From: Octopus bimaculoides
Lineage: Eukaryota
Assembly: GCF_001194135.2 (NCBI RefSeq)
Contig: NC_068981.1
Location: 107,964,470 to 108,025,891 of the forward strand
Direction of reading: 5' to 3'
DNA length: 61,422 nucleotides
Shown: positions 511 to 53,408 of the stretch, piece by piece
Numbering within the stretch: the first letter of the stretch is position 1
Layout of the letters: each line of letters starts with the position of its first letter
Notes under the pieces: model-generated
Database searches by the model: none
Seen by the model: the letters and a program-made list of their open reading frames with translations, nothing else
What the model was told of the DNA's origin: nothing
Program-made: the position numbers and the translations under genes

Positions 511-745
511 ACAATATATATATTTCGTTTTGGGATTTGGTTTGTAAGATTCTTTACTTGAGTTCGTGTGTTGAAGCATATTTTGTTGTGTCTGAGGAGT
601 GGCATTCTCTTTTAGTGCCTTATTATCTAATACTCTCACCGGTAANNNNNNNNNNNNNNNNNNNNNNNNNNNNNNNNNNNNNNNNNNNNNNNNNNNNNNN
701 NNNNNNNNNNNNNNNNNNNNNNNNNNNNNNNNNNNNNNNNNNNNN

Positions 746-3200: not shown

Positions 3201-4924
3201 GAAGTTCAAAATCATTCATACAAACAGCAAAAAAATACAGATACAAACAAATAATTTCTTTTATTGGCTATTTAAATTAGAATGAGTTCATTTCAAAATA
3301 ATATTTATATATATTTGTATTGCATTTGTAAATGCATGAAGAATTGTTTTATGTACATTTTTATTTTTATATCTATTATATATAACTGTTTTTCGTTTGT
3401 CATAAAATAAAGTTGTTAAAAGTATATTAGAGTAATTATTTGAAGTAACAAGTTGGAGTACTATATAATAGGCATTAGCTAGAATTGTAAAAACTACTGG
3501 CTTCATAGGTGAAATTTATGGAATTTACTCTGGGAGCGATGAAGCTTAGTTGCACACTTGGACATTTAATAGTTTGTTCCTTTTGAAGATGACGACTCCA
3601 TCCCTTACCAAGTTGTATCAATGAGATTTGATGATCCCACTGAGGTGTTTCACGATCCCGAGCAAAGCCTTAACATGGTCGCTCTATTTACTAATAATAG
3701 CAGTCATATTTTCTTTCAATTGCATCCTACCATCTTAAGAGCAAATAACACCTTATATAATGTATTCCTATTCACTCAAAAAGACAAGCTGGCCATTTGT
3801 AGAATGTATTTGATTATAGGTCTATAGAAGCCGACTAGGAGTTAAACAACAGCGGGAGATTTGATATCAACAAGTTAATGAAATACACAATGTCCGCTTC
3901 CAGTGGAGTATGGTACATACATACTGTTATACAACCATCTGGGTAGTTTGTTGGTAGCTAAATGTATTGATTATGACCACAACACGATACCGGTGATGGG
4001 ATGTGAACTATCAAGCCGTCCATAAATAGGCTAGTATATCATTGACTCGGCAATGTGCGACTCCTTTGCCCATAATAGCCTGAAGCCAAAGATAACAGGC
4101 AGAAATTACAGAAAAGGAAAAGACAATAGTCTTAAAATAATTAAAATTAAAGCAACCACCTATTATTACATACCATTTCTGGAAATGCCATCAGAAACAT
4201 AAGATTATAACAGACAATCTTTGCTTCTGTGTTGGAGATAAAATTGTATCTAAAATAGTTGCTAATTACAGGTTTAAAAACTTCGTTTTATGTAATCCCT
4301 TTGACTCTGAGTTGATGTTAATGATAAACGATTCATTATACTCGGTAATAATTCTAAACATATTCATTAACTATTTATTTTAATATCTACAAATATAGAT
4401 TGAGTAATCCCGCAGCGTATTGAAATATATAACAACATACATACTCACACTTAAACTGCAATTTTTTTCTCTGCCTAAGGCAAGTTGTTTTGACACATGC
4501 GGCATTAACACATTAACACTTTATCAAAAATATTTAACAATGGTAATGTCTGAAATAGCCATTTATAGCACATCAAAAGAACTTGATTGTCTTTGAAAGA
4601 CTAAGCGACCTCCAGAAAGAACTGTATAATTATAAACTGTCAGTGAGAAGCCTTATGATAGAACATGAGATTAATTGTATCATCTAGGCCTGTCTTTCAA
4701 AATTTCTACAGATCATAATCTTTACACTCAAATATTCGGTAACACAACACACCACTATTTCGAAACTTACCTAAAAGAAATTAAAGACAGGTTCAACCAG
4801 TAGTTTCAGCAAGTTTAAAAGGTAATATTATTAATATTTCATCATCTACATATGTGTGTGTGTGTGCCTGTGTGTATGTATGTGTATACATACACATATG
4901 TGCATACGTATGTGTATACGTATG

Positions 4925-6470
4925 CATGCGATTATTTTTGCCGTGAAGAAATTTCACAGATTTCTCCACGGTAAAATGTTTCGACTTCAGACGGTCCACC
5001 GACCGTTACTAACAATCTTCCGATCGAAGAAAGGAATTCCTACCCATACAGATAACAGATTACAACGCTGGCGTACAATATTGTTAAATTACAACTTTAA
5101 GACGGAGTACATTCCTTCTAAGAAAATTGGCCATGCAGACTGTTTATCTGGGCTAATTCCGAAGAATACGGAACTGCTGGAAGATACGGTGATAGCCGCA
5201 TTACAATCAGAAAAGGAAATTAAAAACGTTATGTGTAATGTTATTCAGGAGTTGCCTGTGACTGCACAAGACATAAAAAGTAAATCAGCGGAGGACAAAT
5301 ACATCATAAAAATGAAGGAAATCTTGAAAAATAAATAAAAGAGAAACACAAATGCAAACCATTTTTCACTCTGCGACAATGTATTAATGTACGCACAAAG
5401 AGTAGTAGTACCAACTGCACTACAGAAACGGATATTATATGAATTTCATAGTGGACACCCGGAGATGTCAAGAATGAAAGCTTTGATGAGGAGGTACGTG
5501 TACTGGCCGACAATGGACCGGAACATTGAAAAGTTTGGTAAAATCATGTAGAGGTTGTGCGCTAGCAGCCAAGGCACCACCGGTCAAATACCAATCGTAG
5601 CCTGAGACAGATAGTCCGTGGTCCAGGGTACATATAGACTACGCTGGACCAGTAAATGACGCGTACTGCTTGATCATTGTTGATAGCTTTACCAAGTGGC
5701 CAGAAGTATGTAAGTACAGTCAACCTACCCTGAAGGCAACAATAAAGTACCTGCACAAACTTTTCGCTCGATACAGTGTTCTGGACACCATAGTATCGGA
5801 CAATGGAACACAATTTACAGGATACTAGTTCAAGAAATTCTGCAAAATGCATACAATCAAGTACATGTTTACCCTCCCTATCACCCGAAGTCAAATGGGC
5901 AAGTAGAACGATTCGTAGATACTTTGAAGTGAGCGCTTAAAAAGGCAAGGAACAAGTTAAGAAATGACGAAGCGCTAACTAAATTCTTAAGGGTGTACAG
6001 AATAACGTGCTATCTGAATACCAGTTGAGCCAAGTTGCCTGAAAGATTAAATCGATCTTCGACAAATTGTTGCCAAAGGAAAAAAACGTATAGAGAAAAT
6101 ACAAAAAATTCAACCAAGCATTTTGATGTCGGAGACAAAGTCCATTTCAAAGTATACAAGAACGGTAAAGAAAGTTGGCAGGATGGTGTAATGACTAAAA
6201 GAATTAGAAACATACTGTATTTAATAAAAGGCCAATGATGGGAGCATTAACGTCATCTAAATCAATTAAAAGTCAGACATACAGAAGAAAGGAAGCAAAT
6301 TCCAATGGAAGTGTTTTACGACATGTTCAATATTCCATCACCGAAAGAGATTGAGCCTAGAAGGATCAGTAACAAAAAACGTAAATAGACTGAACATTTA
6401 GAAATAATTCTTAAGCGGAAAAGGTACTGAACTCCTCAGGGGAGCAAAATTTCAAAAAGGGGGAGGTGTT
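4925..6470 (+). mobile_element. Ty3/Gypsy LTR retrotransposon pol fragment (RNase H end plus integrase) with polypurine tract and start of 3' LTR
   Basis: HRPLLTIF.SKKGIPTHT.NRLQRW..ILLNYNF (RNase H); HSGHP..SRMKAL.RRYVYWP..C..C (zinc finger); RVHIDYAGP, IVSDNGTQF, PYHP.SNGQVERFV (integrase). PPT at 6454-6466 followed by TGTT. Several stops and frameshifts. Confidence 0.92.
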
Positions 6471-6873: not shown

Positions 6874-8163
6874 AAAATTAATTTCATTTTCTACGGAAGT
6901 CGAAATCTCAAAAGGGATGTTGTGGCGAGAGTCACGACACCCCCTACGAGAATAAACTTGACCGAACGACTATAAATAGTACCGGTCTGAGTGAAACAGA
7001 GTAGGCGTTAATCGCAGGAAGTCGTAAGGTATCATTTTNNNNNNNNNNNNNNNNNNNNNNNNNNNNNNNNNNNNNNNNNNNNNNNNNNNNNNNNNNNNNN
7101 NNNNNNNNNNNNNNNNNNNNNNNNNNNNNNNNNNNNNNNNNNNNNNNNNNNNNNNNNNNNNNNNNNNNNNNNNNNNNNNNNNNNNNNNNNNNNNNNNNNN
7201 NNNNNNNNNNNNNNNNNNNNNNNNNNNNNNNNNNNNNNNNNNNNNNNNNNNNNNNNNNNNNNNNNNNNNNNNNNNNNNNNNNNNNNNNNNNNNNNNNNNN
7301 NNNNNNNNNNNNNNNNNNNNNNNNNNNNNNNNNNNNNNNNNNNNNNNNNNNNNNNNNNNNNNNNNNNNNNNNNNNNNNNNNNNNNNNNNNNNNNNNNNNN
7401 NNNNNNNNNNNNNNNNNNNNNNNNNNNNNNNNNNNNNNNNNNNNNNNNNNNNNNNNNNNNNNNNNNNNNNNNNNNNNNNNNNNNNNNNNNNNNNNNNNNN
7501 NNNNNNNNNNNNNNNNNNNNNNNNNNNNAATCTTTTCCCTTCATTTCTTTGCTACCTATGGCCTCAATTCGCTACCTCTCTTCATCTAATATCAACCCCA
7601 CACAGATTCCCACACACCTCCCGCCTTCACTTTCACTCACACACCTGCACACCGCCTAACTCGGTACACTCTCCACACACACCACTATGCAAACACCCAT
7701 ACACATTATTCAACCCAGTACTCATATCACACACCCACACACACCTTCCCACTCCCAGTAACCACCTCCCTCACCCCTATCCCACATCCCAACCTCTATC
7801 TCTCGCCACCCTGTCACACCTTACACTTCTATGCATTTTCCCACAAGACAGTACTCACTCCAAAAAGCACACACAATACACAAAACGTCTGAACAGAAAA
7901 TATATACACGCGCGCAACACGCGTAAATGCATACAACTTTCGCACACAAACATACATAATACACAAGCACACTATAGGGTCACACACACATACACATATG
8001 CACACACCACCCGAAGAAGCACACATCAACTGCTAAACACAAGCGTTTTCATATGGACACACGCACACACACACACACACACAGATGATAGTGTGTGTGT
8101 GTATATATATATAGAAGTGTGTATATGTGTGTAAGACTATTATCTCGCCGTGTATGCGTGTGC

Positions 8164-32840: not shown

Positions 32841-33957
32841 TCTAATAAAACCAAATCATGTTAAATTAACAAAACCTAATCATTCCCAACATTTTGATTA
32901 TCTCCCTTATACCGAAAAAATCCCTGATTACCTCCCCCTGTTTCGAACTCTACATCACACCATAACGAATAGATGACACATCAGTAAAGAAATTTGAGAA
33001 ATTTGAAAAGAAAATGCGAAACCAGTTATTTCTCCCAAAACAATGTCACTACACACAAAATTTTATATCATTTTCCTAACATGAAGATTTTAATATATTT
33101 TTTAACCATATAATACAAATTTTCTGTAGTTTTTCATTCTATTTTGTTTTTATACATCCAACCATGTGCTTTCACATACCAACTCTCTCACCCATATATG
33201 TATATATGTGTGTGTAAATATATATATATATATATGCACACACACAGAGGCAAATGCATTTGCACACATACGTACACACGTCCATATACACACACATAAA
33301 TACCAGTACATGTAATGCATATCACTCCACTTAATGTACGCATGGGGTCACTTACACATATATATACACACAGGTCCACATATTTTTCAGCTCGCCCAAC
33401 ACGCACCCCCACCTCATTCATACATACACACTCACCATCCTCACATACAAAAGCGCGAAAGAATAAATTCGTTTGGCCAGGTCACCGTCATTATCTCCCT
33501 TCCATTCAGCCTTCTTCTGGCTATTTCGTCATGCTGTACCGTTAATCCCTACAAAAACTTTTGTATGTATGTATTCGAAATCTGTGTGTGCACGCGCGTA
33601 AGAGAGAGATGAAGAGATATATAGAGGTAGAGAGCACGAGACAGAGAGGGAGTGAAAAAAATTGGAAATCTGTATATATAAAAGGCAGAATGTGTATGTG
33701 TGTGTGTACGTGAATGTAATTTATGCATGCCCACAAATTAGCACGCATGTAGCGACAATTTTAGGACGACATTCGTCATGACCCTAGCTGCATTTCCGTC
33801 AACTTTTTCTCTCAGAGGCACCCAAGTATAGCTGTAAAAATCGATTTTCAACCATAACTTTTACCAATTTTGAAGTTTGCTAACATGGCGAAGTCAAAGT
33901 GTGCGTATGTGCGTGAAGGAGAGAGAGAAAGAAATTGTGTGTGTGTGAGAGAGGGGG

Positions 33958-33989
<32 letters not shown>

Positions 33990-34397
33990 NNNNNNNNNNN
34001 NNNNNNNNNNNNNNNNNNNNNNNNNNNNNNNNNNNNNNNNNNNNNNNNNNNNNNNNNNNNNNNNNNNNNNNNNNNNNNNNNNNNNNNNNNNNNNNNNNNN
34101 NNNNNNNNNNNNNNNNNNNNNNNNNNNNNNNNNNNNNNNNNNNNNNNNNNNNNNNNNNNNNNNNNNNNNNNNNNNNNNNNNNNNNNNNNNNNNNNNNNNN
34201 NNNNNNNNNNNNNNNNNNNNNNNNNNNNNNNNNNNNNNNNNNNNNNNAGAAAAAAGTTTATTGACAATCCATTTATTTAACAACAATGAAACAAAGAGGT
34301 ATGTAACAATTTGTCAGTGAATTACACAATATAAATAGGTAAAATTTCCAAGGCTTCCACCACCCCCAACCCGTTTTTCGGACCACAAAAAGGGTTT

Positions 34398-34493
34398 GGT
34401 AATTTTTCAGATTAACACCCGCATGATTTCCACTAGGGTGTTAGGGTTAGGGTTTTAGGGTCAGGGTTAGGGTTTTAGGGTTAGGATTAGGGT

Positions 34494-34528
<35 letters not shown>

Positions 34529-34612
34529 GGTTAGGGTTGGTGTTAGGTTTACGGTTTTAGGGTCAGGATTAGGGTTTTAGGGTTAGGGTTTAGGGTTAGG
34601 ATTAGAGTTAAC
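34398..34612 (+). mobile_element. One-armed copy of the telomeric-repeat MITE: terminus plus about 170 bp of degenerate (TTAGGG)n
   Basis: ggtaatttttcagattaacacccgcatgatttccactagggtgttagggtt matches the TIR at 51328; followed by TTAGGG, TTTAGGG and TTAGGA variants. Confidence 0.85.
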
Positions 34613-34925
34613 CTAGAAGGGACACGCCCCTTATTTTTTGGTTAAGGCTGTTAGTAAGTTTTCCTAAGTTACTTCAATCCAGATCCCCAATGCAAACCTT
34701 CAGATCAACCTTCTCCTATGCAGATCTCTAATGCAACTTAAAAACAAAACAGCCAATGAGTGGAAATAACCAATAAACTTGATTCCTTATGGATTTCCCA
34801 ATCAAATTGCCAGCAAACCATTTTCAGCCAAACCAATTTCAACGGATTTCGCTCAAATCTGATGTTGATGTTACTTATTTTGGTTTGAAATAAAGCACTT
34901 GATCACTTAATAATCCGAGCTTAAT

Positions 34926-34954
34926 CCGGGGCAGCGCCGGGCTATACTGCTAGT
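34926..34954 (+). mobile_element. Helitron 3' terminus
   Basis: GC hairpin ccggggcagcgccggg followed after 8 nt by CTAG then T (CTRR|T rule). 5' TC end not located. Confidence 0.65.
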
Positions 34955-35679
34955 GGAGAATATATGCTCATACACACAGTCGAAGATACATAAAGATTTA
35001 TTTATCAAAGACATTTATGAACTTGTGAAGCTAATCAAACAAGTAATGAAGAAACTATTTTAATTCGTTATAGAGATATCTTTAAAATATTATGAAACTT
35101 TTTAATAGCAACAAACATGTTTTATTAAAATACCAAATTTACAGGGGAGAGTTACAGTGCCTTAATATAAAACACTAACCGGTTCAATTTCGACTCATTT
35201 ATTTATTTATCCCAGAAGACTTTCTCGTCACTGCATTTACAACCGTATCAATGGATTTCGACTGTCCGTTATTGAAGCTGCATTCTTTTTTGTTTTTGGT
35301 TTTGTTTATTTTGTGGGGTTTTATGCGAGATTTTGTTGTGCGCGCGTGCCAGCATGCGTATATGTTTTGTGTATGTATCCTACATATTCATGTGTGTGTG
35401 TGTGTACCTCTGCTTCCTTGCATGTGTACGAGTGTGTCTAAATGTATGAATTTGTGTGAGTATGTACATACGCCTGTTATGTATGGATGTGTCTCCATGA
35501 GTCTTTGTGTGTATGCGTGTGTGTGCATAAAATGTGTTTGTCATCTTTTGTATGTGTATACTTTCCTTTCTTGTTTTTAGACTTTTTAAGCATCCCTGGA
35601 GGGCGCTTTTGCCTACTCATTGCGTAGACAATTTCAATTGATGGAAATTTTACAACTCACTAAAGTAATGTTATACAAG

Positions 35680-37267: not shown

Positions 37268-38515
37268 ATGGAAACAACAGTGAAATGTTGCAATATAACA
37301 TCTAACAGTAGAACTACTAACCAGAAGTTGCGTCAAAAATTTGTCAGTGTACAAAACATACCTCTACCATCAACCAACAGTAATCTACCAGTAAAAGTAA
37401 TGGGCGTCAATAGTCAGTATTTAAAGTTATCCTTGACTGGAAGCAATGGATCAAAGGTAAGAAAGGATCGTAATTCTTCAGGAAAATCATCGGAAAGAAA
37501 ATACGATTCATTTAGTGAAAGAAAAACAAAGACTTATGAATGGAGGCAAAAGAAAAGGCAGCAGAAGATATTTAAAGCAGTACCTCGGCACTTATCTCGG
37601 TTGAGTGAGAGGAGGAAAATAAATGACATTTTATCGAGCAGCTGTTCTACAGAAACATTTCTTCAGAAGCAGTTCGAAGATAATGTGAAACAACGTCAAG
37701 AATTATTACGTCTTTATAACGAATGGCAAATGCATGTTACTCTTCAATATGAAGAAACAGAACAGATTAACAAGAAATTGTCTGTCCCAAAATATTTTAA
37801 ATTATCCAAGTTTGAAACTTCAAAGAAACTGCCCAAGGTAATGAAGGAAAGTGAAGTGAAAACCAACGAATTACTGAGATTTTTTAAATTGCTCCAAAAT
37901 GATGTTGTTGCTTGCTTTTTGGAAAGAGATTCTTGTTATCGTCTCTCCGATAAATATCTTCTGGCAGAAACATTTGTGTATTTCAAGCGAGCAGGTTATT
38001 TGGCCGATAAATATACCTGTTATAACTTCTTTGTAGCTCTTTATCTTGCCAGTGATATGGAGGAAGATGAAGAGGAACTCAAATATGAAATATTCCCTTG
38101 GGCTTTGGGAAAAAACTGGCCTAGTAATTTTCCACGTTTTCTTAAAAAACGGGATCAATTATTCAAGAAAATAGGTTATCATGGAGTAGTTAGCCGAGTG
38201 TGCTGTGAAGAAATAATGGCCATACTACCAAACAGCCAATATTGGCAGAGAGAAAGACCATTACATCATGCTGGAGGTGTAAGAAAAACTCATTGCTTTG
38301 ATTCCGGTGTTCAGGAATGCAATAAGAAAGATGGTTATTACTATAAATATGGCATGAAAATGCGACCGTTCTGTTTGGCACCAAATAAAGATGCCATTTC
38401 TTGTCTTTTGTGTCACCCGGAGTTAGCACCAACTCCAAAACAAATAGCCTTTGTGGATCCTGTAAAAGTTTATCATAATGAAGACAATCAAATTTCTCCA
38501 ATTGTATCTAAATGA
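37268..38515 (+). CDS. SPDYA: Speedy/RINGO family atypical CDK activator, 415 aa, single coding exon
   Basis: Speedy box: FFKLL..D....[22 protein letters not shown]....[52 protein letters not shown]...WQRERP.HH.G.VR. Uninterrupted ORF; AATAAA at 38532 and about 38720. Confidence 0.95.
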
Positions 38516-41347: not shown

Positions 41348-42553
41348 TATTTACATTTGATGGATATTTGTCTTTATCTTGTTTATTGTTAACATGTTTC
41401 AGCTGATATACCCTCCAGCTTTCATCGGGTGTCTTGGGGAAATTTCAAACCTGGGTTCTCATTCCTAAGGTATTTTCAATGTTATTATTATTATTCAGTA
41501 GTTTTATTTTTATAACGTGCCTTCACTTCACTANNNNNNNNNNATTATTATTATTCAGTAGTTTTATTTTTATAACGTGCCTTCACTTCACTACCGAGCG
41601 CAGCTCTGTGTGCCTTGGGTATGTGCTGTGGTTTCCTGTGATGCTCTTATGGTTACTGTATTAAAAATGTTTTGTGTAGGATGCGTGCAGTGCCCAGTAG
41701 TGCAATTTTCTGGATGTTGTATATATTTGTAAGTCCTGGTGTTTTTGTTGTGTATTTGTCTGAATATTTTTTCATCGTACCTAATGCACCCACTGATAGG
41801 AATTATTTCTGTTTTTAGATTCCACATTCGAGTTACCTCTATTTCCAGGTCTTTGTATTTTGAAAGTTTCTCCATATCTTTCAGAGAAACGTTGTCATCT
41901 GCTGGTATTGATACATCAATTAGAAAACATTTTTTTTCTTCATGATCTCTGACAACTATATCTGTCCTATTAATTTCTCTATCTGTGTGTATTCGCATAT
42001 CCCCGAGTATGGTTGCTTTCTCGTTTTCTGTGACTTTTTCTGGCATGTGCTTATACCATCTTTTTTCTGTTGTTATTCCATAGTGTTGGCATAGCTTCCA
42101 GTGTATGTAGGTCCCAACTTTGTCATGTCTGTGAATATATTCCTTCTTAGCCAGGACTGGGCAGCCAGAGATAATATGATTTATTGTTTCTTGTCCATCT
42201 CCACATATTCTGCAGTTACTTTTTATGTTTATTTTTATTATATGTTTTTGGTAATTTCTTGTAGGGAGGCTTTGGTCTTGTGCTGTAATTAAAAATCCTT
42301 CAGTCTCTGCTTTGAGTCCTGAGCTTCTCAACCATTACTAGGATTTTCCTCTGTGTATTTCTTTTGCATTTAGTTTAGCCCAGTATTTGCCATGGAGCTT
42401 TTCTTGCCATCATTTTATCAAGGTCCGTTACTGTTCTAGTTTTAGTTTGGATTTCATTTGTTTTATAGCTTTTGTTGTTTCTTCTTCTTCATATTTGTTA
42501 GGTAGTATGACTTCTTGTTTGTATTTGTCAGCTTCCTTAAATACTGAAAACAG

Positions 42554-50300: not shown

Positions 50301-51327
50301 CCCTCAACTGGGAGTGGACAGTTGTATTGGTGGGTTGGTGAGGTATTGAGCCAGTTGATGAGAGATTAAAGATATACAGGTTTCTTGCAGTAGAGTAGAC
50401 ACATGGATACCTCAGTTGGAAGGGGAAGAGAGTGAGTTAGAAAGTAAGGTAAAGAGAGCAGGTGAGCCACAGAATAAGATAAAGAAAGCAGTGCACACAT
50501 AAGCAAAATCTATAGATCTGCACATACAGACATCAAATACTTGCACATATCCACACAACAATGCATAACTGCCCTGTAGATGTTGAAACTCCAGTGAAAG
50601 AGCCTTGTATCTAGCTTAGAAACTGGTTCTTTCTCCATTTGCAAGACATCTTCAAATAATGCTACATACATGCATATATTAGATAGATAATGCTACATAC
50701 ATACATATATTACATAGATGCATGCATGCATGGATAGCTAAACATGTACATTTCTACAAAGTGTTTCCATCAAATACAGAAATGGTGAAAGTACAGAAGC
50801 AAAAAATAGCTTCCAATGTCCAAGCAAGGGAACACACACACTGATGCACTGCTAATTATATTTGTAGATTTTCCTTTTTAGTTCGGTGGTGAGTCAGAAG
50901 AAATAGTTGTGCACTGACGTAAAGGCCTTAAAGTATTTGTAATAAGTCCTAAATCTAAGTTCATATTCCATCAAAGTCAACTTTAGTGTCATTCTTCTGG
51001 GGTCAATAAAATAAGTGCAATCAAATACTTAGATTAATCCAATCTTAATTAACAAAAACTTTTTGCTTTCGTTCACAAATGATAGTTTTCGTTATTACAA
51101 ATGACAAAATGTCGAGAGAGTTTTTGTTCTTGGTGTAGTTGTAGTGGTAGATTGTGGTTAGTTGCTTGTCAGTTACTTGTTCGTCCTCCAACTGTTCATT
51201 ATCTTTGTGTTGTCAGCTGCTGTCCGCTGTCTCTGTTGGTCAACTCTTACAGCAGCGTTTCTCAACAGGGGTTCCCCGGAACCTTAGAGTTCCGCGAGAA
51301 AGAGTGAGATAAGCTAATGCTAATTTT

Positions 51328-51521
51328 GGTAAATTTTCAGATTAACACCCGCACGATTTTCGCTAGGGATTTAGGGTTATAGTTTTAGGGCCAGGGTTAG
51401 GGTTTAGGGTTACGGTTAGGGTTAGGGATGGAATTCCCTAACAGTAACTGTAACCCTAACCCTAAAACCTAACCCTAACACCCTAGTGAAAATCGTGCGG
51501 GTGTTAATCTGAAAATTTACC
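51328..51521. mobile_element. 194-bp palindromic MITE containing telomeric repeats, 8-bp TSD (Merlin-type)
   Basis: Perfect TIR GGTAAATTTTCAGATTAACACCCGCACGATTTTC on both ends; (TTAGGG)n-GGAATTCC-(CCCTAA)n core; TSD ctaatttt / ctaatttc. Confidence 0.88.
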
Positions 51522-51747
51522 CTAATTTCATGATCTTAAAATTTCTATACTACTTGTACAAAATATTGGTACTATTCAAGAAGAGTAGTCCCAGTGCGCG
51601 CACTCGCGCATCCGCGCTAGCTAGTCATGACTAGTCAATCCTACAACGACTATCTAGCGTGAATGCGCGTATGCGCAAAACATGTATGAGGGGTTTTTTT
51701 AAAACAAAGTAAAACATTTTTTTTAAAACAAAGTAAATAATTTTTTT

Positions 51748-52125
51748 GACGATCTTTCGATACGAGTCGAGTTCGAAATATCGGCGTTTTCCATAAAAAG
51801 TGTCTTTGGCGATCTTTACCAAATATCAGCCTTTTCCATAAAAAGTGTTGGAGAGAAAGAGGGAAACGACGTCGTAAAAGCGAAAGAGATACAGAGAGCG
51901 CAATTTCTTTTGAAGGGTTTAGGGTTAGGGTTAGGGTTATGGTTTGAAGGGTTTAGGGTTTTAGGGTTAGGGAATTCCGTCCCTAACCGTAACCCCAAAC
52001 ACTAACCCTAACACCGTAGTGAAGATTGTGCGGGTGTTACGGAAAAGGCCGATCTTTGGTAAAGATCGTCGAAGACACTTTTTACGGAAAAGGCCGATAT
52101 TTCGGACTCGTATCGAAAGATCGCC
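51748..52125. mobile_element. 378-bp foldback MITE with roughly 90-100-bp repeat-structured TIRs and telomeric core, 8-bp TSD
   Basis: TIR G(A/G)CGATCTTTCGATACGAGTC..; arms 51748-51846 and 52038-52125; TTAGGG and CCCTAA arrays around GGAATTCC (51971); TSD attttttt on both sides. Confidence 0.85.
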
Positions 52126-52540
52126 ATTTTTTTTGTTGAATCTTCCCCATCTTACTCTTAAGACGTTTCTTTACGTTCTTCCAGGATGTATTTTGGTGTC
52201 ACATCTATTTCAGTAATCCCATTGTACGCACTCCAACAATCAGAATATATAGTCGTCCCTGGTTTGANNNNNNNNNNCACTCCAACAATCAGAATATATA
52301 GTCGTCCCTGGTTTGATAATTTTTTTAATAAGTGGTAGAAGAGTTTCAGAAGAACGGTCTAAAGACTAAAAACCTCTTTTTATCCTCCATTGTATTTGCG
52401 CTTGCACATCATAGATTCATCTATTTCTACAGTGTGCCTAAGTCCACCAATTTGGTAGGGGTTACGCAAAAGATAATTTCTTGTAATGTCCCTCATGTTC
52501 TGATACCATTGAACAACAGTAGATTTTGAAAGACTGACTT
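52126..52540 (-). mobile_element. Merlin (IS1595-like DDE) transposase relic, internally deleted
   Basis: TVVQWYQNMRD...IGGLRHTVEIDESMMCKRKYNGG; DRSSETLLPLIKKIIKPGTTIYSDCWSAY; SWKNVKKRLR. Confidence 0.88.
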
Positions 52541-53408
52541 ATTAATATTTCCGCTACACATTCATTCTATCATAAATGCGTACATTTGTATATGTTAGAA
52601 ATCCAGAATATTTCTCTGCTCATCACAGTGAATGTGTGTTCATTGTGTTTTAAACGATATTAACTACGGGACAAAATCGAAGATATGATCGAAATCTTTC
52701 ACACAATGAAACAAGTTCCAGTGTTACGCTTTAAACAACCTTAACTATGTACGAGATGGCAGATATAATTGAAATCTTTAACACACTGTAATATTGATAC
52801 ATCAAAATAGGGACAATTTATAAAACGTGGTATTTTCACAACCCTGCCAGTCTTCAATAATTTGCCTCACCTCTCATTTTTTTTTTATGTAACTATATTT
52901 GCACCTTCCTACATGCATTGAATCCTTGTCTCACGTTCCCTGCGTATGAATGGGTCCTAATAACAAACAAATGAGCGAATTATTATAATTATTACAAGGG
53001 TGTAACGATACAGAATCGGTAAATTGGTGTGAAAATGTTCAGTATTTAATATTGACTTTTTTTTTTTTAGTTCCCATCCTACCAAAATCAACGTCCATCA
53101 CATTACATGGAATACACGAAGTCAAATTGTAATATTTAGTTTCGTTTCAATTGCATGGATTTCTTTTCATTCTGTTGAGTATAATAACTGGAATATCATT
53201 TCAGTTGACACTACTATCATAAAAGCCCCCTCAACTACAAAAGACAGTAATTAAAAAAAACCGACTTGCTTTCAATCAGAAGGAATCATCACAGTTGTTA
53301 TAATTAGATATTTGGACAACACGAAATATAATTTGATTAATCCAGAATTAAAGAATATGTAATTCTGTGCACATAGAATAGTATCCCATCTAACATTGCG
53401 CTGAGATA

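Follow-up and report, generated by a model that had tools for sequence, protein, structure and literature searches.

Two ciliate transposons, TBE1 of Oxytricha and Tel-1 of Tetrahymena, carry the telomeric repeat of their host in their terminal inverted repeats (TIRs). In both, the telomere repeats sit at the outer tips of the TIRs, and TBE1 belongs to the Tc1/mariner superfamily. Interstitial telomeric sequences are usually ascribed to chromosome fusion or to telomerase acting at breaks, and for short vertebrate examples, including those termed TERC-ITS, insertion by telomerase at breaks has been shown by empty-site comparison (PMC7215372, PMC8537989). The foldback elements FB, Galileo (P superfamily), Tetris and Tm1 are palindromes over their entire length, with conserved short ends and tandem-repeat arms that turn over quickly (PMC4079207, PMC3573991, PMC3169594). 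Merlin/IS1595 transposons and their miniature inverted-repeat transposable elements (MITEs) (Feschotte 2004; PMC8101967) are defined by 5′-GG TIRs and target-site duplications (TSDs) of 8-9 bp, and the 191 Merlin transposase proteins of Octopus bimaculoides are the most reported among protostomes (PMC8101967). Here we describe a 194-bp palindrome, copy B, and two relatives, copies A and C, in a 61,422-nt stretch of O. bimaculoides DNA (the whole stretch is hereafter called the window). Copy B is very probably a non-autonomous, foldback-type cut-and-paste DNA transposon, i.e. a MITE, which is probably of the Merlin type and has telomere-like arms.

Like the foldbacks, copy B is a whole-element palindrome with conserved short ends and tandem-repeat arms that appear to turn over quickly (hexamers in O. 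bimaculoides, 120-bp units in an O. sinensis relative). It differs from FB, Galileo, Tetris and Tm1 in its 8-bp TSD, its GG ends, the telomere motif of its repeat unit and its very small size (194 bp). With Merlin it shares GG TIRs, an 8-bp TSD, a Merlin-rich host and partial similarity to one Merlin TIR (GGTACTTCTACAGAACAGCCCACCCATGG), but its interior is a perfect foldback made up of telomere-type hexamers of the host, an arrangement without description in the Merlin literature searched. Short internal TTAGGG-like tracts and orthologous empty sites are common to copy B and the vertebrate telomerase insertions; those are one-off and lack TIRs, whereas the octopus tract is bounded by transposon ends flanked by an 8-bp TSD and recurs at several sites. 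In contrast to TBE1 and Tel-1, which belong to unrelated hosts and another superfamily, the telomere repeats of copy B are internal, behind a unique TIR of 39 nt. Our searches of the published literature (not Repbase/Dfam) returned no report of telomeric repeats within a MITE or foldback element. A DNA transposon that carries a head-to-head telomere-like tract to a new site represents a third, copyable route to interstitial telomeric sequence.

Copy B and its duplicated target comprise the following features, in window coordinates:

51320 to 51327, no strand: left TSD copy, CTAATTTT; a single CTAATTTC stands at the empty sites of the sister species
51328 to 51368, plus strand: left TIR, GGTAAATTTTCAGATTAACACCCGCACGATTTTC (34 nt perfect), running on to GCTAGGG; 30/34 match to the TIR of an O. 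sinensis foldback
51369 to 51429, plus strand: left arm, a degenerate TTAGGG array with the G-rich strand running 5′ to 3′ toward the centre
51430 to 51437, no strand: palindrome centre, GGAATTCC; identical in copy C
51438 to 51480, plus strand: right arm, a degenerate CCCTAA array mirroring the left arm
51481 to 51521, minus strand: right TIR, reverse complement of the left TIR (40/41)
51522 to 51529, no strand: right TSD copy, CTAATTTC, matching the empty sites

The palindrome spans positions 51328-51521 (194 nt); the 34 nt at either end, GGTAAATTTTCAGATTAACACCCGCACGATTTTC, pair without a mismatch, or at 40/41 positions when the comparison is extended. Both ends start GGTAAATTTTCAG, i.e. 5′-GG, with boundaries set by the empty site described below, and the TIR of ~39 nt reads GGTAAATTTTCAGATTAACACCCGCACGATTTTCRCTA. 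On the top strand, TTAGGG repeats occupy the left arm and CCCTAA repeats the right, such that both G-rich strands point inward and meet at GGAATTCC. The two arrays total only ~110 bp. These results agree with an earlier note on this DNA, which had proposed a 194-bp foldback with a perfect 34-bp inverted repeat starting GG and with degenerate TTAGGG arms meeting head-to-head. The note had also named TTAGGG as the telomere repeat, and this is consistent with the sole telomere motif that has been determined experimentally in cephalopods (PMC13218726, PMC6160780). The sequence TTAGGGTTAGGG, allowing at most one mismatch, occurred 23 times in the window compared with 0.1 times expected, and every occurrence fell within three loci.

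When folded as single-stranded DNA, copy B was predicted to form one long hairpin of -81.6 kcal/mol, compared with -21.6 ± 3.0 kcal/mol for shuffled sequences (z = -20.3), and the left arm holds a canonical G-quadruplex motif, GGGCCAGGGTTAGGGTTTAGGG. Copy B thus has the sequence potential for a very stable hairpin or cruciform, with G-quadruplex potential in the left arm. No open reading frame (ORF) of at least 25 aa was present inside the 194 bp. Copy B is short and non-coding with TIRs and a TSD, as expected of a MITE, and it is mostly palindromic with long inverted arms of tandem repeats, as expected of a foldback. Rfam at gathering thresholds and tRNA scans, both applied to the whole window, returned nothing, and so an origin from telomerase RNA, a ribozyme or a short interspersed nuclear element (SINE) is unsupported.

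The ortholog of a Speedy protein (P0121) was used to reach the orthologous locus in O. sinensis (L122) and in O. vulgaris (L123). Both loci share ~88% identity with the window and are sufficiently compact to include the insertion point, and both read ...GAGATAAACTAATGCTAATTTCATGATCTTAAAATT..., with a single CTAATTTC and without the palindrome. When the 194 nt and one 8-mer were removed from the window, the joined flanks gave an ungapped alignment of 115/126 to O. vulgaris (L123 20446-20571), and an identical result, 115/126 ungapped, was obtained for O. sinensis (L122 21023-21148). This joined-flank alignment replaced a MAFFT alignment of filled versus empty sites, in which the gap was misplaced. 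Since a clean empty site with one 8-mer is present in two species, the 8-bp TSD is real and the insertion was precise. Copy B therefore inserted in the O. bimaculoides lineage after its split from O. vulgaris and O. sinensis. The last base of the left TSD copy has been altered since insertion (TSD = CTAATTTY); agreement of at least 7/8, as between the flanks CTAATTTT and CTAATTTC, has a frequency of 0.0013 at random window positions.

Together, the empty sites, the 8-bp TSD and defined TIRs that recur elsewhere mark the palindrome as a discrete mobile insertion. The earlier note had read it as a cut-and-paste element with an 8-bp TSD that disperses interstitial telomeric sequence, and had suggested looking for empty orthologous sites. 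That comparison has now been run, with a clean empty site in O. vulgaris and O. sinensis; the single 8-mer there bears out the duplication, the core reading as a mobile element is supported, and the insertion of a telomere-armed copy has been demonstrated. The target was itself part of a repeat:

51253 to 51567, no strand: host of copy B, an older inverted-repeat element with the TIR CAGYGYTTYTCAAC, now a remnant

The insertion point lies 61 bp inside this older element, a full copy of which persists in O. vulgaris (L123 20459-20979).

Helitrons and Helentrons leave no TSD, insert between A and T or T and T, and have either 5′-TC...CTRR-3′ ends or short TIRs with a 3′ hairpin. A derivative of either was excluded by the real 8-bp TSD, the symmetric 34-nt TIRs and the GG...CC ends. 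The empty sites also bear on whether the palindrome is a relic of telomere-to-telomere fusion or an artefact of short-read scaffold assembly. Head-to-head TTAGGG/CCCTAA arrays are the signature of a fusion site and the window has 14 N gaps, but both possibilities are barely conceivable. The site lies in the interior of a 200-Mb chromosome (CM046601.1, ~108 Mb), its flanks are contiguous in two other species, and arrays of only ~110 bp in total argue against a fusion relic. A foldback with the same TIR is present in the independent O. sinensis assembly, and an artefact would not yield a TSD that matches a single-copy 8-mer of other species.

This O. sinensis foldback came to light when Merlin transposase genes were used to sample Octopus DNA. 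It is 3.1 kb long (L126 161-3272), both of its termini are GGTAAAATTACAGATTATCACCCCCACGATTTTCACTAAGA, and it is flanked on both sides by a perfect 8-bp TSD, AAAAAAAT. Its TIR (161-194) matches that of copy B at 30/34 positions (E = 7.6e-5). The arms, of ~1.5 kb each, consist of poly-A followed by subterminal tandem repeats of ~120 bp and a further palindrome, and neither an ORF nor TTAGGG is present within the element. Homology between the two elements stops at ...CACTA, exactly at the start of TAGGG. From this comparison, copy B appears to be a telomere-repeat-armed branch of an older foldback family, of which the O. sinensis element would be a non-telomeric member. A common terminus of ~39 nt and a common 8-bp TSD, combined with unrelated repetitive arms, is the foldback-type pattern of FB, Galileo and Tetris. 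With the same TIR joined to telomeric arms in O. bimaculoides and to 120-bp-repeat arms in O. sinensis, the two elements form a tractable pair for the study of foldback arm turnover.

The 61-kb window holds three copies of the family, of which only copy B is intact. The other two, and the element in which one of them lies, are:

34398 to 34610, plus strand: copy A, a single arm; TIR match of 37/41 and the same degenerate array start, CACTAGGGTGTTAGGGTTAGGGTTTTAGGG
51909 to 52039, plus strand: copy C, eroded; its TTAGGG/CCCTAA arms meet head-to-head at the centre GGAATTCC (51972-51979)
51748 to 52125, no strand: Merlin-type MITE of 378 bp hosting copy C; TIR GGCGATCTTTCGATACGAG

In copy A the TIR is followed by ~170 nt of TTAGGG-like repeats and the opposite arm is absent. 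It lies within a composite stretch of 1.29 kb (33670-34959) found in neither O. sinensis nor O. vulgaris, where the equivalent interval is 43 bp. Copy C retains a truncated TIR at its right end, CCGTAGTGAAGATTGTGCGGGTGTTA (52014-52039), and its left TIR is gone. The irregular array start CACTAGGGTGTTAGGGTTAGGGTTTTAGGG is common to copy A and the right arms of copies B and C. Such sharing of degenerate repeat variants indicates that the arrays were copied along with the ends and were not made anew at each site. An attempt to orient copy C relative to copy B by the asymmetric centre was ambiguous, as a palindrome would give.

In total, ~66 kb of O. bimaculoides DNA and ~126 kb of O. sinensis/O. 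vulgaris DNA were examined. The B-type TIR was absent from European Nucleotide Archive (ENA) contigs L129 and L131-133 and from Logan contigs L125, L138 and L139, and a 22-mer of the copy B TIR had 0 matches in IMG/VR. A metagenome scan with the 15-mer CAGATTAACACCCGC gave at least 120 matches, none of which reached the full motif or bore telomere repeats, and we attribute them to chance on these grounds.

The vertebrate precedent raises the possibility that telomerase made the tract during double-strand-break repair, with no transposon involved, and the inward G-rich strand on both arms does fit extension of both break ends. We consider this very improbable. The ends of the insertion are 39 nt of non-telomeric sequence, identical on both sides, which recurs 17 kb away and in O. 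sinensis without telomere repeats. Moreover, the clean 8-bp TSD argues against break repair, and the degenerate variants common to the copies point to inheritance rather than synthesis on the spot. A telomerase insertion would have repeats abutting the break, no shared unique ends and no regular TSD, and copy B has none of these properties. Read-through of telomerase RNA, as in TERC-ITS, was likewise rejected on two grounds. In each arm the G-rich strand has the unique sequence on its 5′ side, whereas the model requires the reverse arrangement, and this unique sequence is a TIR that also occurs on a copy devoid of telomere repeats.

The superfamily of copy B is probably Merlin/IS1595. One Merlin protein from PMC8101967 was used as the query to recover Merlin loci. 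A Merlin gene (DDE_Tnp_IS1595) was found on O. bimaculoides scaffold L124, and an autonomous Merlin, ~99% identical between its insertions, was found at three O. sinensis/O. vulgaris loci (L126 4266-12986, L127 3888-12938 and L128 4253-12988). This element is 8.7 kb long, with 354-bp TIRs starting GG and a 305-aa DDE_Tnp_IS1595 gene, and its three insertions have three different perfect 8-bp TSDs (GCAAATCT, GAAACTTT and CAAGGCTT). From its sequence it looks recently active. The TIR of the MITE that hosts copy C matches the TIR of this Merlin (0/5000 shuffles reached the score), and the MITE, which lies 226 bp from copy B, has a perfect 8-bp TSD, ATTTTTTT, at 51740-51747 and 52126-52133.

The TIR closest to that of copy B was found in a compact autonomous Merlin of 1,059 bp, which is complete as its own contig in Logan (L134-136; SRR22455136, SRR22455138 and SRR22455140). 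Its TIRs, GGTACTTCTACAGAACAGCCCACCCATGG, are 29 nt long and its transposase 299 aa. An anchored comparison without gaps showed that the TIRs of copy B, copy A and the O. sinensis foldback match this TIR at 15-17/27 positions beyond the GG (permutation p = 1.5e-3 to 1e-5). Both TSD-bearing members of the family, copy B and the O. sinensis foldback, have exactly 8-bp TSDs and GG ends, like all four Octopus Merlin insertions seen. Copy B thus combines the 5′-GG TIR starts and the 8-bp TSD of Merlin with a host lineage in which Merlin transposases are active. The phrase 'Merlin-type ends', used in the earlier note, is accurate as a description, as GG termini and an 8-bp TSD fit the published definition (PMC8101967).

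Copy B could instead belong to another superfamily that makes 8-bp TSDs, either Mutator/Foldback-like, P/Galileo-like or hAT. In favour of this, a full-length palindrome with internally repetitive arms is the classic foldback architecture (FB, Galileo, Tetris and Tm1), a cognate Merlin transposase was not found in ~190 kb of Octopus DNA, and the similarity to the Octopus Merlin TIR is not significant. Among the candidates, hAT TIRs start YARNG, P/Galileo TIRs start CA with 7-8-bp TSDs, and FB and Tm1-type elements give TSDs of 9 bp and Galileo of 7 bp. Both TSD-bearing copies have 8 bp, which differs from the 9 bp of FB/Tm1 and the 7 bp of Galileo. The GG ends with exactly 8-bp TSDs in both of these members, as in the four Octopus Merlin insertions, and the anchored TIR similarity to a true Merlin (L134-136) disfavour the other superfamilies, and we regard them as unlikely.

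Several points weigh against a Merlin-type element with inherited telomeric arms. The B-type TIR is not significantly similar to the Octopus Merlin TIR (GGCGATGTTTCG...), with 140-1185/5000 shuffles reaching the score. The compact Merlin whose TIR resembles that of copy B comes from runs of unidentified species, and a transposase gene flanked by the B-type TIR was not found in ~190 kb of Octopus DNA; for these two reasons, Merlin membership is probable and not proven. An 8-bp TSD fits hAT, P and some Mutator/foldback elements too. Copy B is the single intact, TSD-bearing copy in O. bimaculoides, as copies A and C are partial and without TSDs. The window is a gap-rich short-read assembly (14 N gaps, 3,166 N bases), in which palindromes are error-prone. 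Finally, an origin of the arms by telomerase healing, which is considered below, is a conjecture.

In our proposed mechanism, a DDE transposase supplied in trans would recognise the ~39-bp TIRs, excise the element and integrate it at an 8-bp staggered cut, the repair of which would give the CTAATTTY duplication. This is suggested by the anatomy of copy B. The telomere-like arms would travel as inherited cargo and would not be added afresh at each insertion, and each insertion would seed a short head-to-head interstitial telomeric tract. In such a family the ends would be conserved while the internally repetitive arms change fast, and in the O. bimaculoides branch the arms would have become TTAGGG arrays. 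As a conjecture for the origin of the arrays, an ancestral copy might have suffered an internal break whose two 3′ ends were lengthened by telomerase, after which the extended ends could have been rejoined or folded back. We propose this tentatively, because the G-rich strand of each arm points inward and because homology to the O. sinensis element stops where TAGGG begins.

It is also conceivable, but quite doubtful, that the telomere-like arms serve the element and that the family arose by telomerase healing a broken or excised transposon. The arrays might then recruit telomere-binding proteins or telomerase, which would protect or extend an excised linear or hairpin intermediate, or they might instead steer the integration site. 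If this were true, a cut-and-paste transposon would exploit the chromosome-end machinery and would be a main source of interstitial telomeric sequences in O. bimaculoides.

Telomere-like tracts were seen in two other elements. On O. bimaculoides scaffold LGKD02092233.1, a different foldback of 730 bp (L124 5565-6294; TIR GATAACGTTGGGATCTTTGGGGTTTGACGGGCAAC) has a degenerate head-to-head TTAGGG/CCCTAA palindrome at its centre (~5890-6030), with neither a B-type end motif nor a clear TSD in the element. In O. sinensis (contig VCDQ01004827.1), a telomere-like array of ~90 bp that runs in one direction only (L130 7398-7490) lies between 45-nt inverted repeats (7177-7221 / 7538-7582), which indicates that telomere-like tracts embedded in transposable elements are not confined to O. 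bimaculoides. Telomere-like cores in two unrelated inverted-repeat elements (L124 5565-6294 and L130 7149-7601) hint at a recurring process, and palindromic elements may repeatedly gain such cores at their centres.

Tracts of this kind are known to be fragile or recombinogenic, and they are able to adopt hairpin, cruciform and G-quadruplex structures. Their dispersal by a mobile element would thus be relevant to the heavily rearranged, repeat-rich genomes of cephalopods. In addition, these elements will confuse scaffolding by telomere motif, e.g. with the TTAGGG setting for cephalopod assemblies (PMC13218726), and will break short-read assemblies.

The sequence to the right of copy B is a hotspot of lineage-specific insertions and deletions. 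Window positions 51568-52543 and L123 20572-21191 are unrelated over ~1 kb and 0.6 kb, respectively, and then realign; on the O. vulgaris side the hotspot carries a MITE with a relative at window 535-645. Each TIR of the MITE at 51748-52125 contains two sub-repeats (AAATATCRGCSTTTTCCATAAAAAGTGT). Copy C could have entered this MITE by nested insertion followed by deletion; alternatively, template switching to copy B, at a distance of 226 bp, could have placed it there. A GC-rich imperfect inverted repeat (51598-51676; GCGCACTCGCGCATCCGCGCTAGCTAGTC / GACTATCTAGCGTGAATGCGCGTATGCGC) is located between the two copies, and the DNA examined contained no further copy of this repeat. A 10-N gap (52268-52277) within 52245-52300 has the same 23-nt sequence (CACTCCAACAATCAGAATATATA) on either side, and these duplicated flanks are probably a scaffold gap-closing artefact. 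The ORF adjoining copy B on the other side (51101-51307) was looked up for other assemblies of the locus and was not on record. Besides copy A itself, the composite stretch at 33670-34959 comprises a (GA)n tract, an N gap and ~350 bp of an unknown repeat that ends in ...GGGGCAGCGCCGGGCTATACTGCTAGT, and the 8.7-kb Merlin contains a nested element of 5.1 kb with 344-bp inverted ends (L126 4638-9755).

Elsewhere in the window, an intronless ORF of 415 aa (37268-38515) encodes a Speedy/RINGO (Spy1) protein that is 95% identical to that of O. vulgaris/O. sinensis, and no other annotated gene is present in the central 21 kb. The record of this ORF on chromosome CM046601.1 (GCA_001194135.2) puts the window at ~107.96-108.03 Mb. 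The C-terminus of a non-LTR (long terminal repeat) reverse transcriptase (zf-RVT) is present at 41591-42331, and a protein search with this ORF returned almost no octopus loci. A transposase-like ORF interrupted by a gap lies at 636-1226, and an RNase H domain of an LTR retrotransposon lies at 4856-5338.

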